DNA from: Octopus sinensis
Taxonomy: Eukaryota
Length of the DNA stretch: 64,000 nt
Direction of reading: 5' to 3'
Assembly (NCBI RefSeq): GCF_006345805.1
Contig: NC_043001.1
Coordinates: 86,180,001-86,244,000 of the forward strand
Shown here: in pieces, positions 19,830 to 44,129 of the stretch
How positions within the stretch are numbered: the stretch's first letter is position 1
How the letters are laid out: every line of letters begins with the position of its first letter
Translations under genes and position numbers: made by a program
The notes under the pieces: model-generated
What the model saw: only the letters and a program-made list of their open reading frames with translations
Databases searched by the model: none
What the model was told of the DNA's origin: nothing

Positions 19830-21310
19830 GCCCGACGGCTTAGAAGGTATGATAAAAGATTCTAATTTTATTATCAAAGCAAAATATTCTAAACAGACGC
19901 GAAGAAATTTTATAGGCAAATTGGTAAAACGATGATAGATGTAAAGGAGACATTTAAAATTGAAGACGTGGAAGAGTTCTGGAAGAAGATAACAATGAAA
20001 AGTTTAATGCTAAAATTGACGGGATAGAACGTGAGAAGGGGGCCACAGGATGTAATTGAAAAGATAGGGTTAGCTCTTATAAAGTCTTATTAATGGAAAA
20101 TCCCGCGACCTGACTTCTAGCTGAATTGTTTGGGAGATGTACACGAAAATTTCACTATATCTCTAATTATCATTCAGAATCCCGAGCAAATATCTACCAA
20201 AATCTCATGATACAAAATTCCTGAAGAATTACCGACAAATGACATGTCTCAATACCACTTACATGACTCCTAAATCTATAATAACTGAAAGAATGTACAC
20301 TTTCCTTGCACAGAACGTTATCCTTCCACAAGCACAGAAAGACAGTAAAATAATTCTTATGGGTGCAAAGATCAATTACCATAAATAGAACGAGTTTAGA
20401 AAGTTGCCGCAGCAAAGTAAAATACTGTGTACGCCGAAGATAGACTACACGAAAGCATTTGATAGTGTCCCACATCGATGGATACTCGAAGTCCTTTATA
20501 TATATATATATATATATATATATGATGGACTTCGAGTATATATAAGATCTTTCTTGCCATCTCCAAAAATTTACGAAACAGCATGCCCAAATAGACCACG
20601 TCTTTTTCTTAACCATAGTAATGGAATAAGCCATTCAATAGCTTCAGTATCACGCGAGGCATCCATTAAAGTGACTCCATGTCCTCATTACTTCTCTGCA
20701 TGGCACTAGTCCCACTTTCAAACCAATTGAACAACATCGGAATGCCTACAAAAGTCTTAGGATAATAAACCATTTCTTTTTGCATGGACAATCTGAAACC
20801 GTTTGCAAGAGATAGACGGGCTGCGAATAAGTGTTAAAGAGTTTAACAATGATATCTGGATGGATTTTGGCCTTGAGAAGTTTGCTAAAGCAAATTTGGA
20901 TTGGACAGAAGCTCAGACAAACAACATCCATTAAATTAGACACTAGCATCAACTTGGCCCACACGAAATGCATAAACACGTAGGTATAATGCAGAGTTGG
21001 CATCAATTTTTCTTGCGAATCTACAAGCTTCCTTGACAACAGAATATAATTGTTTTCTTGTTCGTACACAAGTCGCAGCATATAGACCTCTGCACTGCAT
21101 AAATACATGTTCATTCCTATAGTGGAGTTTCCATAGCATAACAATCCTTTTCCTTCAGTACTTTTATGTTGGTAAAAACCGTCAACGTCTGCCTAAAGGC
21201 AGTGAATGTTAGAGATCAATCATTTTCTTGTCTTCTTGCCCTTGCGTTGGAGTCCCAGAGGCGAGCAATTAATGATATCGAACTGTACTCGACAACTGGA
21301 TTTGACTACG
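19830..21310 (+). mobile_element. Highly decayed RT fragment, R4/Dong-like LINE
   Basis: IDYTKAFDSVPHRWILEVL (ORF 20404) and a degenerate MDNLKPFA; paralogous to 30150-31410. Confidence 0.65.
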
Positions 21311-21575
21311 TATGTTCTAATATGTTTAAACAGTAATATACTTTTTTTTAAACAGTAATATACTTTTTAAACAGTAATATACTCTTTTGAAAGCGTTTTA
21401 TCGAACGTTTTAAGTATATTAAGAAATTTAATAGTAATTCACTTTAGCAGATAATGACTTTATTTGGAGGAAAATATTAAATAATTTCCTTTGAGCGACT
21501 ATAGATAAACCAAAAAATGTATATCTTAATAGCTTCAAAACTTATATATACATCATTCTTCTCTATTTTTTTCAG

Positions 21576-21590
21576 TTCGTCCTTCACATG
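21576..21590 (+). CDS. 15-nt microexon, array copy 1, (F)RPSH
   Basis: tttttttcAG TTCGTCCTTCACATG GTATGT. Confidence 0.75.
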
Positions 21591-21877
21591 GTATGTAACT
21601 ATTTAAATATTTCCAATTGCATTTTCCAGTTTAAAACAGTCATTTTCTAGTTTAAAACATTAAGTTGAGGTCTTAAGTCACATTATTGAATTCATAAGAT
21701 GCTGTGTATATATTTTCAGATTGATTTGATTGTAATTCACTTTAGCAGTTAATAATTTTATTTGGAGGAAAATATTAAATTATTTCCTTTGAACGACTAT
21801 AGATAAACCAAAAAAATGTATATCATAATAGCTTCAGAATTTATATATACATCATTCTTCTCTATTTTCTTTTTCAG

Positions 21878-21892
21878 TTCGTCCTTCACAAG
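21878..21892 (+). CDS. 15-nt microexon, array copy 2, (V)RPSQ
   Basis: tttttcAG TTCGTCCTTCACAAG GTATGT. Confidence 0.75.
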
Positions 21893-22168
21893 GTATGTAA
21901 CTATTTCCAATTGCATTTTCCAGTTTAAAACAGTCATTTTCTAGTTTAAAACATTAATTTGAAGTCTTAATTCACATTATTGAATTCATAAGATACTGTG
22001 TATATACTTTCAGATTGATTTGATAGTAATTCACTTTAGCAGTTAATAATTTTATTTGGAGGAAAATATTAAATTATTTCCTTTGAATGAATATAGATAA
22101 ACCAAAAAAATGTATATCTTAATAGCTTCAAAACTTATATATACATCATTCTTCTCTATTTTTTTCAG

Positions 22169-22183
22169 TTCGTCCTTCACATG
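22169..22183 (+). CDS. 15-nt microexon, array copy 3, (V)RPSH
   Basis: tttttcAG TTCGTCCTTCACATG GTATGT. Confidence 0.75.
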
Positions 22184-22470
22184 GTATGTAACTATTTAAA
22201 TATTTCCAATTGCATTTTCCAGTTTAAAACAGTCATTTTCTAGTTTAAAACATTAAGTTGAGGTCTTAAGTCACATTATTGAATTCATAAGATGCTGTGT
22301 ATATATTTTCAGATTGATTTGATTGTAATTCACTTTAGCAGTTAATAATTTTATTTGGAGGAAAATATTAAATTATTTCCTTTGAACGACTATAGATAAA
22401 CCAAAAAAATGTATATCATAATAGCTTCAGAATTTATATATACATCATTCTTCTCTATTTTCTTTTTCAG

Positions 22471-41068: not shown

Positions 41069-41146
41069 ATATAAATAAACCAGAGAAATATATACTTCAA
41101 TAACCACGTAATTTATATGTATATCATTCTTTATGTTTTTTTTTAG

Positions 41147-41176
41147 TTCTCGATACATACGGACTTCCTTCACGCC
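41147..41176 (+). CDS. 30-nt microexon, type B, (V)LDTYGLPSR
   Basis: ttttAG ... C|GTATGTAACT; paralogous to 29524. Confidence 0.7.
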
Positions 41177-41324
41177 GTATGTAACTATTTAAATTATTTC
41201 CAATTGAATTTCCTAGTTTAAAATAATTGCTTTAAGATTTTAATCTACATTAGCGACCCAATATATCACTATAGCTATATGTTCACATTGTTGATATTGT
41301 AGTAACGATCTGAAAATTTATATT

Positions 41325-42117
41325 TCTATATATATAAAGCTGAGAATGTGTGTCTGTCTGTCTGTTTGTGTGTTTCCCTAAAACTTGATAACTACAGAAC
41401 CAATTTCATTCAAATTTTACACATGCCTTACTTAGGGTCCGGGGAGTGTCATCGGCCAAAAATGTTTAACTTCTTGCCTATTGCGAGCCCACAGCAATAT
41501 CATATCTTCCCCACTACGATTCCCTAAAACTTGAGAACTACACAACCAATTCCATTCAATTTTTACACATGCCTTACTTAGGGTCCATGTAGTTTCATGG
41601 GCAAAAAGAATGTTCAACTTCTTGCCTAGAGCGAGCCCATAGCAATATCATATCTTCTCCACTATTTCAGTATTACGTGTTAAAAGTGAAACAAAAACAT
41701 TTCTCTATTTTATGTCAGATACTTTCACTTTAACAATAAAAATTAGAGATAATAATAACAATTGAATTATATGTAGTAAGTAATAATAAAAATCAAACTA
41801 AAGTATAATGTAATCGTAACATAACAAAAGTAAAAATAGCAATTGGTATAAAATTGCTTCAATGATTTGAACTTGAATAAGTGGTTTCACATGAATGGGA
41901 ATAAATTAAAAATAAAATTAGTGTGCAGAAATGGAATAGTCCTACAATTCCAGTCTGTTATATATTAACAGTATTGCTATCACAAGCGATATCAAGATAT
42001 AACTTTATATTTTGTATTTTATATGTAAATGTATATATATATAGATGTACATGTCGTATGTACACATATATACATGCACTAGCACTATGACTCGGCAAAG
42101 ACGGGTCATAATGCTAG
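41325..42117 (+). mobile_element. Non-autonomous Helitron
   Basis: 5' TCTATATATATAAAG, 3' hairpin gactcggcaaagacgggtc then CTAG-T; internal ~150-bp duplication; interrupts the cassette sequence. Confidence 0.8.
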
Positions 42118-42432
42118 TAATCTATATTACATACACACAAATTTCACAGAAGAAATCACGTTAATTTCACAGAAGAAATCATACAAGCACAGAGTGTTCA
42201 GGTTAAATTTGACAGCTTGTGTACAAAGGAAACTCAACTGCCCATCCAAAATTAAACACATTTCAGAAAAGGAAAGAATATCAACTAGATTATTGCTAGC
42301 AATATTCGTAACATCCATTTTAATGTAGAAATCAACCACTATTAACTAATTACGTTCTCATAAGTTTAAACTGGCAAATTCTGTTCTTAAAACCACAATT
42401 TTTTATCAAGTCTCTTAAGTATGCTTTTTCAG

Positions 42433-42900
42433 GGAGACGGCGAGCTGGTAGAAACGTTAACACGCCGGGCGAAATGCGTAGCCGTATTTCGTCTGCCGTT
42501 ACGTTCTGAATTCAAATTCCGCCGAGGTCGCCTTTTCCTTTCATCCTTTCGGAGTCCATTAAATAAGTACCAGTTACGCACTGGGGTCGATATAATCGAC
42601 TTAATCCGTTTGTCTGTCCTTGTTTATCCTCTCTGTGTTTAGTCCCTTTTGAGTAGTAAAGAAATAGGTATATAACTATTTAAATATTCCCAATTGCATT
42701 TTCTAGTTTAAAATAGATACGTTGAGATGTTTTTTTTCTACTCTAGGCACAAGGCCCGAAATGTTGGGAAATAGGGCCAGTCAATTAGATCGACCCAGTA
42801 CGCAACTGGTACTTAATTTATCGATCCCGAAAGGATGAAAGGCAAAGACAACCTCGGCGAAATTTGAACTCAGAACTTAATTGCTTAGCAGTGTTTCGTC
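42433..42900. mobile_element. SINE S2 (+, 42433-42667) and SINE S2 (-, about 42730-42900)
   Basis: S2 core motifs in opposite orientations. Confidence 0.8.
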
Positions 42901-44129
42901 TGTATGAATATTGCTTACACTCAAAACATCTTACATGTCCAGGCTGTATTTGACATTTGTGAACAAGGAAAAAAAATCAGTAACGCATTCAAAATCAAAC
43001 GCATTTAAAAAAAAATAAAGAATATCATCTAGATTATGGCTAGCAAATAAGAGTTTACTGAAAGCAGTTGCCCTCAACTCCCACCTGAGCTTCAAGACGG
43101 TTCCGGAACCTGGTACATGCATTCCTTTTGTGTCCCTGACAATTTTCTCGAGCACCTCCATCGCCTTGGCCATGAAAACGAAGGAGGTTGATTGTTCACA
43201 AAAGTATCAAGCTGACAAGGAAAATTAGACATAGAAAATCGTGAATTTTTGTCCGAACGTCGAGTACGCGCATGTTTGTGTGTGCGTGTATGTGTTTGAG
43301 TATGTGTGCAATACTACTACCACTACTACTCGGGGCTAATGCAGTTTCGCAACTCTCCTGTACTCCTACTAGTTGTCGGAGATTACGAATATGCAAAAAA
43401 AAAAATTTTAATTTTACCCCCGTCCCCACCACCCATTTAATTTTTTGATTTTGTTTACTTTAAAGAGAGCATGGCGAACTGACGAACAATTGCAAATCGA
43501 AATTAAATATACAAACATTAAAGTGAAAAGAAATTGCGTTTTACTTGTGTTTGCCTTAAATGATCGTAAATAATAATTTAATGTAAATTAAATATACTCC
43601 ATTTTATGAGAAACAAACATTAATTTTTAATAATTAATGTTATAAAGTTTAATAAGGGGCTGAAATTTCACCCCTTAACCAATTTAAAATTTTGAACTTT
43701 TTCATCCATTTTTCTATTTGCTTGTCTATGTATCCCTGGCCGTATATTTATAAAATATATTTGTCAATTAAATATGGCGATCCTATAGAAGACGGTGTTA
43801 CGAAAACGTTGTTTCTTGCATATTCGGAATCTCCGTCATCTAAATTATAGGGAAGAAAAATTTCGAAAAAGTACAAAATTTTAAGGGGGTAGGGAACGAT
43901 AGTAGGGGTGGGGAGTGGTGGTAGAGGTGGGGAGGGGTAGTTGGGGTGGAGAGTGGTGGTAGGGGTGGGAAGTGATGGTAACGGTGAGAAGGGTGGTAGG
44001 GGTGGGGAGTTGGGTTAAATTTTTTTTTTGCATATTCGTAATCACCGACATTTAAAACGTAGGGATCCGGAAAAAAATTTTCAAAACAAGGAGGGGTGCG
44101 AAACTGCATCAGCCCCGAAGAATCCTTTC

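Follow-up and report, generated by a model that had tools for sequence, protein, structure and literature searches.

Duplicated phase-1 microexons most likely encoding the variable linker of an ITIH4-like gene in Octopus sinensis

The window considered here is a stretch of 64,000 nucleotides (nt) from Octopus sinensis (assembly GCF_006345805.1, contig NC_043001.1, positions 86,180,001 to 86,244,000, forward strand), which is AT-rich and full of microsatellites, short interspersed elements (SINEs) and other transposon debris. Its region from 20.7 to 43.3 kb, in which an earlier sequence-only reading had noticed multi-kb cassettes carrying tiny exon-like units, is identified through homology of its flanks as the middle of a single plus-strand gene of the ITIH family, and of the H4-like branch within that family. 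Most likely, these blocks contain real exons, 15, 18 and 30 nt in length, that would encode a variable linker of a secreted ITIH4-like protein. The reading as a whole, namely that duplicated phase-1 microexons form the linker of an ITIH4-like gene and that their bodies change faster than the adjoining introns, is given a probability of about three in four.

The identity of the host gene is carried by the exons on either side of the repeated region (Table 1). In the first two open reading frames (ORFs) of the table, a VWA domain is recovered at 83 bits against a Pfam cut-off of 23.8, and the strings DVSGSMSG and GGTNIN line up with the metal ion-dependent adhesion site (MIDAS) residues named for human ITIH4 in PMC7793589, with DxSxS and GGT both kept. 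When these two exons are spliced to the third, whose 3' end encodes ...VVTKSTVKEKHFGQN, the product aligns with human ITIH4 (9c4f_I) over residues 256-600 (phmmer, E=1.2e-67), post-VWA segment included, and the alignment stops at ...FVTPLTSMVVTK, residue 600. The bikunin-linking DPH[FY]/PHF motif was not found in any plus frame of the window; the DPHF consensus is present in H1-H3 and absent from H4 (PMC7793589), so this result fits the H4-like branch.

Downstream of the region, the first three exons were picked by a phase-1 exon scan. The ORF at 47235-47693, compared with 1.84 billion representative proteins, matched full-length VIT+VWA proteins near their C-termini, among them GAB1598744.1 of NCBI, annotated as "ITIH4-like [Argonauta hians]". 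The other matched proteins are 854-907 amino acids long, lie on Logan contigs of 2.9-3.2 kb, the size of an mRNA, and contain related linkers; the colinear homologues P0022 and P0026 carry a VIT domain. No Pfam match was obtained for the C-terminal domain, and a Pfam search of the concatenated plus-strand ORFs at ~7.2-13.9 kb and 43.5-52 kb returned only VWA. In octopus ink, a tryptic peptide, DTLPNIPGIFIKPFSCSNNLCLR (PMC10142993), matches the family member P0024 of Octopus bimaculoides and reaches from the last part of the linker into the 105-nt exon type, indicating that proteins of this ITIH4-like family are secreted.

Contig L001 (Logan SRR11869391, 2495 bp), from a related octopod, is ~78% identical to positions 3603-5849 of the window over exons and introns together. 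Identity of the large VWA exon to its counterpart there is 84.7% (84/87/83% at the three codon positions), with 3 gap columns vs 125 in the introns. The frame is thus kept at near-neutral sequence divergence, and the whole gene may be fast-evolving.

Ten candidate microexons were recognised between these flanks (five of type b, two of type A and three of type B), each preceded by a long pyrimidine tract and AG and followed by GTATGT or GTAGGT as donor. All ten have lengths that are multiples of 3 and are open in phase 1. The A units at 29030 and 33958 and the B units at 29524, 39127 and 41147 had already been called live, and each of them has these splice signals. The proposal that the 15-nt exons are short relatives of B likewise holds: their alignment with the 30-nt exons covers the 3' half of the latter, the length gap is exactly 15 nt, and the downstream intron is common to both. 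A strict pattern (pyrimidine tract, AG, 9-60 nt in a multiple of 3, open frame, consensus donor) matched 11 times on the plus strand, eight of the matches being b1-b5 and B1-B3, and once on the minus strand, against a shuffle mean of 0.55. The exon bodies are GC-rich, at 53% (range 44-72%) vs 24% (14-32%) in the flanks. Joined in order, the last exon before the linker, the ten live microexons and the four downstream exons make one open frame to a stop homologous with the Argonauta C-terminus. With the exons on either side in phase 1 and all microexon lengths divisible by 3, any subset of the microexons could be included without breaking the frame.

The same design is found in a second octopod genus. 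The ITIH4-like protein of Argonauta hians (locus L003, gene 10001-41228) is colinear with the product predicted here, with 59% identity before the linker and 38% after it. Its linker, ...KETVKGT TRPPS VSHGLFGLQRP VRPPV VSHRNFDQQHR FNPPV ..., corresponds to AG/GT-bounded microexons (24, 15, 33 and 39 nt, phase 1-1), followed by 105-nt and 276-nt exons that match those of 105 and 285 nt in the window, and the annotated coding sequence uses eleven such microexons. It seems unlikely that exons of 15 nt would be annotated without transcript support. The 15-nt type (xRP[PS]x, donor GTATGTAA) is common to both genera, with a cross-genus layout of an ACAG/TCAG acceptor, xx xGx CCT ... and the donor GGTATGTAA. 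Both genes have a linker of phase-1 microexons, duplicated multi-kb cassettes, a dead truncated copy and exon bodies that change faster than their flanks: in Argonauta, a 2.5-kb cassette is repeated at 97.9% identity, older units are 75-90% identical, and a dead, truncated 33-nt copy lies at ~34646. The two genes differ in their exon sizes (15/24/33/39 nt vs 15/18/30 nt here), in the five-copy 294-bp array, which Argonauta does not have, and in the threonine-rich exon, which is 39 nt there vs a 159-nt (GKPTTT)n exon here. Taken together, the continuous host frame, the homologous annotated architecture in Argonauta and the related linkers on mRNA-sized contigs support the predicted status of these units as exons, and each individual copy would presumably be spliced in in Octopus sinensis.

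Three side observations concern this part of the gene. The mucin-like (GKPTTT)n exon is made by 7.6 tandem copies of an 18-nt unit (94% identity), and its Argonauta counterpart encodes TTVTDAPILLHRPG; the 159 nt here vs 39 nt there indicate that the repeat expanded inside the exon in this lineage. Between the VVTK exon and the cassettes, at 13722-13733, there is a 12-nt candidate microexon in phase 1-1, cag/GAGCGCACAGAA/gtaagt, which might be the counterpart of the 24-nt KETVKGT exon of Argonauta or a chance match. In L003, a second VIT+VWA gene with a 904-residue product lies at 49079-51228, ~8 kb downstream of the ITIH4-like gene, so that the family is arranged in tandem there.

Table 1. Exons, cassettes and lost copies of the ITIH4-like gene (positions within the window; a slash marks an exon-intron boundary).
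Feature	Position	Strand	Description	Match or remark
VWA-domain exon (ORF)	3182-3544	+	MIDAS motif DVSGSMSG	Pfam VWA E=3e-23; ITIH4 alignment from residue 256
Large VWA/post-VWA exon	4762-5471	+	ends CTT AAG/gtgagt, phase 0	Pfam VWA; ITIH4 alignment; L001 alignment
Last exon before linker	7227-7302	+	YNFVTPLTSMVVTKSTVKEKHFGQN; ends AAC G/gtaagt, leaves phase 1	ITIH4 to residue 600; Argonauta P0026 to residue 605
b1	21576-21590	+	candidate 15-nt exon, (V)RPSH	VRPSH in frame
b2	21878-21892	+	candidate 15-nt exon, (V)RPSQ	
b3	22169-22183	+	candidate 15-nt exon, (V)RPSH	
b4	22471-22485	+	candidate 15-nt exon, (V)RPSQ	
b5	22767-22781	+	candidate 15-nt exon, (V)RPSK	
A1	29030-29047	+	candidate 18-nt exon, (G)YYSMT	cassette c2
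B1	29524-29553	+	candidate 30-nt exon, (V)LDPSRLPSR	cassette c2
A2	33958-33975	+	candidate 18-nt exon, (G)QLGMR	cassette c4
B2	39127-39156	+	candidate 30-nt exon, (V)HRLSILASR	
B3	41147-41176	+	candidate 30-nt exon, (V)LDTYGLPSR	SINE 40839-41069 lies 78 nt upstream
Cassette c1	20649-23211	+	LINE-fragment tail and landmark L1; 294-bp tandem array 21426-22918 with b1-b5; mariner-end block	
Cassette c2	27423-30071	+	L2; inserted ~420-bp dispersed repeat 28147-28576; A1; L3; B1; mariner-end block	
Cassette c3	30789-33461	+	LINE fragment and L1; transposase fragment 31722-32219 (-); dead 15-nt copy; inverted mariner-end block 33077-33461	
Cassette c4	33480-34302	+	with A2	
Last cassette	42299-43261	+	dead B position	
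Bx, dead 15-nt copy	32732-32746	+	acceptor ttttttcag kept; donor GT>AT (atatataactatttaaa)	ATATAT at 32747
A-exon loss site, cassette c5	40061-40113	+	(TG)n joined directly to gtaaaaatagtctg	~130 nt of c4 missing, A included
Dead B position, last cassette	42433-42720	+	SINE 42433-42671 in place of acceptor and exon	
159-nt exon, phase 1-1	45061-45219	+	(GKPTTT)n...GKPLPIFLHAP	matches Argonauta ...PTTTTTVTDAPILLHRPG
105-nt exon, phase 1-1	46157-46261	+	IALKPLNCKLDLCF...	matches 105-nt Argonauta exon IVIKPTHCSSNLCF...
285-nt exon, phase 1-1	47404-47688	+	C-terminal domain	matches full-length VIT+VWA proteins; colinear with P0026
Last coding exon	48828-48955	+	...DYAKAFQCTEK...SSCFTM, then stop	colinear with P0026

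Outside the exons, the cassettes are recognised by a series of intronic landmarks, which the sequence-only reading had described as recurring in order three to five times. String counts agree: ctaatatgtttaaacag occurs four times (21317, 31402, 33586 and 39861), ccggtgaa.cgctat three times (27454, 33702 and 39978), gtatgtaactatttaaa five times and gtaaaaatagtctg twice, the number expected by chance for such strings being 0. Two of the landmarks need amendment. The string gttagcttttt does recur, but the occurrence at 31959 is a chance match within a transposase fragment and the true third copy, with one mismatch, is at 34164; copies of ttgactacgtac also exist, of which only one is exact and the others are 1-2 bases off. 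In a self-BLAST of the window, cassette homology was collinear, on the plus strand and limited to 20.6-43.3 kb. A atattacatacacacaag block continues into a mariner-like inverted-repeat end, TA/CAGGGTGTTCGG, which follows every B-type unit, and one copy of it (33077-33461) is inverted along with flank that is not transposable-element (TE) sequence. Because this mariner end is common to all cassettes, they must have arisen from a single ancestral unit through segmental duplication within the locus. The five copies of the 294-bp array are 88-96% identical, which indicates a recent expansion. At many block edges, TE and microsatellite sequences are found, and a LINE-like element at 34700-37900 on the plus strand (reverse transcriptase ORFs 35530-36650, RVT_1 E=1e-14, (AGA)40 run 37045-37164) splits c4 between A2 and B2.

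That the landmarks are merely fragments of a genome-wide dispersed repeat, a TE or a satellite, with incidental splice-like strings is a very improbable explanation. Parts of the cassettes are indeed TE-derived, with a LINE tail beside L1 and the mariner end, once inverted, in the atattacatacacacaag block, and SINEs lie at two B positions. True dispersed repeats in the window (the SINE family and a ~420-bp element) nevertheless occur throughout it on both strands, unlike the cassettes, of which scattered copies were absent from the rest of the 64 kb. Several unrelated landmarks also keep a collinear order, the inverted copy takes in non-TE flank, and the exon type recurs at the corresponding position of the Argonauta gene. 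Orthologous cassettes, sought through intronic ORFs among 5.8 billion proteins, gave no related sequence.

A telomere-like (TTAGGG)2-3 run was seen at 39032-39043, just upstream of B2, at the junction of an L1-like block with the B acceptor region, and a 146-bp tandem duplication (two copies, 88% identity, 41374-41664) lies between B3 and its mariner-end block. A metagenome scan for the donor-flank 29-mer found none.

Alongside the live copies, 3 of 13 copies are visibly dead, each through a different lesion. The loss placed at 32747 by the sequence-only reading is real, with the donor changed to ATATAT, and the copy concerned is of the 15-nt type. The absence of an A exon at about 40100 is equally clear, ~130 nt having gone between (TG)n and gtaaaaatagtctg. 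At about 42430-42670, where a missing B exon had been reported, a SINE occupies its place, and the remnant consists only of "ag" and the donor-side intron gtatataactatttaaa (ag/gtatataactatttaaa at 42666-42684; intron part 42668-42684). The SINEs at 40839 and 42433 were considered as one insertion that preceded duplication; this found no support, as their mutual identity is 86%, while an unrelated copy at 13889 matches one of them at 91%. Duplication and loss are therefore seen directly, as the turnover part of the earlier proposal held; its further suggestion of diversifying selection is taken up below.

The dead copies, together with LINE, SINE and mariner insertions throughout the region, invite the explanation that most or all copies are unused pseudo-exons, decaying as intronic relics while the mRNA joins 7302 to 45061 or uses one or two copies. 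No transcript support for this gene was seen, and the VWA exon shows little codon-position contrast vs L001. Such an explanation is nonetheless improbable: ten copies keep the pyrimidine tract, AG, consensus donor, 3n length, phase-1 frame and GC-rich body, the five-copy array is young, eleven such exons stand in the annotated Argonauta coding sequence, and the coding exons on both sides are undamaged as far as the stop.

The paralogous exons differ from one another more than their surroundings do while keeping their length. Among B1, B2 and B3, 11 of 30 exon sites vary vs 14 of 167 in the flanks, with 2 variable sites in the first 50 intron bases and 0 gap columns in the exon vs 21 in the flanks; between A1 and A2, 9 of 18 exon sites differ vs 70 of 334 in the flanks. 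Pooled over three independent comparisons, 20 substitutions were counted vs a mean of 8.0 in same-sized intronic windows of the same alignments (p=0.004). In the flanks, G/C sites change 2.2 times as fast as A/T sites; with a correction for composition, the expectation rose to 10.2 (p=0.004); the excess is present at A/T sites as well (24% vs 8%). Exon bodies thus accumulate differences at about double the rate of composition-matched flanks. Between b-type and B-type units, the best-conserved part comprises the 3' end of the exon and ~50 nt of the downstream intron (73-91% vs 40-60% elsewhere), and the far flanks of B1 and B2 (100-300 nt) are as conserved as the near ones. A templated origin of the variable segment of B2 was considered and dropped, as the window holds no second copy of it.

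Several points weigh against the proposed reading. Per-pair scan statistics for an exon hot spot were not significant, other intronic windows reaching a similar substitution density, and only the a-priori and pooled tests were therefore used. Zero indels in 78 exon bases has a chance expectation of ~37%, which is not unusual, and length conservation was accordingly set aside as stand-alone evidence. Dead copies still keep the conserved intron block, which could thus reflect gene conversion or recent origin instead of splicing constraint. In Argonauta, paralogous microexons show 44 substitutions vs 24.7 expected (p=3e-4), a figure from pairs that share sequences and are partly non-independent. 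The Argonauta gene model is taken from an annotation, homology of the 18-nt A exon with the 33-nt exon of Argonauta is not demonstrable, and the protein collection yielded no RNA or protein of this gene from Octopus sinensis.

At ~17:2, the nonsynonymous to synonymous ratio does not significantly exceed the neutral 3:1. As this ratio, the scan statistics and the absence of indels are all non-significant, diversifying or positive selection on the peptides is suggested by the twofold rate excess and its replication, not proven, and the earlier proposal stands here only in its own word, "possible".

The same data leave room for a possible, though rather unlikely, alternative in which the microexons are used and the linker is only a disordered, mucin-like spacer: exon bodies would be neutral, introns would be slowed by splice signals or gene conversion, and neither bait function nor positive selection would be involved. 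The ratio and the per-pair statistics agree with it, as do the faster G/C sites of the flanks, the mucin-like repeat of the next exon and the conservation of the intron block even in dead copies. Set against these are the roughly twofold exon excess, which survives composition correction at A/T sites too, and the replication of this excess in Argonauta. In addition, exon GC is maintained against an AT-biased background, and the equal conservation of far and near flanks in B1/B2 means that splice-signal constraint alone explains the contrast poorly.

Under the preferred reading, in which the cassettes carry functional linker exons, the segment between 7302 and 45.1-49.0 kb would be encoded by phase-1 exons of 15, 18 and 30 nt, copies of which could be gained, lost or skipped without damage to the frame. 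The 294-bp unit has been amplified to five, and the multi-kb A-B cassettes were copied from one ancestral unit that already had the mariner end. Copies die through ordinary lesions (a donor mutation, a microsatellite-associated deletion, or a SINE plus deletion). While ~50 nt of donor-side intron and the pyrimidine tract stay conserved, exon bodies would be free, or pushed, to change, and these conserved flanks may allow recognition of such short exons.

The position of the linker invites comparison with human ITIH4, in which the protease-susceptible region (PSR; residues 633-713, 17.3% Pro) varies between species, is cleaved after Arg by several proteases and serves as bait, the protease ending up in an inhibitory complex that depends on the MIDAS (PMC7793589). 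The protein predicted here resembles human ITIH4 in its MIDAS motif and in the post-VWA segment over residues 256-600, and no DPHF motif was found in it. Its linker lies between colinear flanks and begins at ~600, where the ITIH4 alignment stops; it is rich in R, P and S (R 18%, S 16%, P 12%; in Argonauta, P 12% and R 12%), and the B exons end in Arg; the human PSR is Pro-rich and Arg-cleaved. It differs in that it cannot be aligned with the PSR, in that it is built of 5-, 6- and 10-residue modules with one exon each, and in that its C-terminal domain has no Pfam match. Position and R/P/S-rich composition lead to the hypothesis that the octopod linker might work like a protease-susceptible bait. 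A more elaborate version, in which each microexon would be a short protease-sensitive module, many ending in Arg, and duplication, loss, divergence and perhaps combinatorial skipping would retune the set of trapped proteases, is doubtful. In alpha-2-macroglobulin, the bait differs greatly from one species to another and is open to cleavage at numerous positions (PMC7793589), and both proteins would combine a hypervariable protease-sensitive segment with an otherwise conserved secreted protein; the likeness would be functional only, as alpha-2-macroglobulin has another fold and traps proteases covalently.

In genomic terms, b1-b5 resemble Dscam-type arrays, being tandem homologous exons of equal length within a 294-bp array. 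A hairpin or a docking/selector RNA structure was looked for in the 50-nt donor-side intron and rejected: RNAalifold gave no consensus pairs in this conserved stretch, and single-sequence z-scores of -1.7 to +1.2 were insignificant. With no selector pairing and no frame reason for exclusivity, the array is not of the Dscam type. Over 20-46 kb, Rfam gave only sub-threshold microsatellite matches and hence no known RNA family.

Discussion of microexons usually centres on deeply conserved neuronal switches, with the secreted-protein families of schistosomes as a second well-known case. According to PMC4350168 and PMC10526429, the schistosome micro-exon genes (MEGs) share with the octopus locus very short symmetrical exons (3n) and fast evolution; their products are secreted, and the genes show local duplication associated with TEs and high dN/dS. 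They differ from it in having a mostly microexonic coding region and small proteins, whereas here only a linker of ~68-70 residues in a protein of ~900 residues is so built, the flanking exons are 76-710 nt long, and microexons are not the majority; there is also no sequence relationship. A literature search on cephalopod microexon arrays or cephalopod ITIH4 found nothing relevant and no description of this architecture there.

The locus would thus represent a third case of microexon use, in a conserved secreted protein whose variable linker stands at a position like that of the bait-like region of ITIH4. Frame-neutral tiny exons are visibly copied, killed and rewritten in it, the design recurs in a second octopod genus, and it offers a concrete place for dating exon birth and death and for comparison between species. 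It also suggests that sequence alone is enough to recognise exons of 15 nt in cephalopod genes, and makes the evolution of bait regions by exon-level modularity a testable idea. Should the modular bait prove true, the linker would be a MEG-like generator of diversity within an innate-defence or secretory protease inhibitor, evolving as in an arms race.

The remaining repeats of the window lie mostly outside the cassettes. Copies of the ~230-bp SINE occur on both strands at 13870-15320, 24200-24390, 25659-25890, 40839-41069, 42433-42880 and 44118-44785, with at least five tandem or nested copies in the cluster at 13.9-15.3 kb. The ~420-bp dispersed repeat (80-92% identity, both strands) is found at 1816-2247, 7766-8181, 28162-28575, inside c2, and 57290-57705. 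A tandem duplication of 365 bp (two copies, 95% identity) lies at 52011-52740. Finally, a perfect 18-nt tandem repeat of five copies, TTACCGTATTGGTCCAAT, occupies 16773-16862 between inverted copies at 16581-16792 and 17316-17102 (88% identity), and these elements together (16581-17316) probably constitute one transposon.

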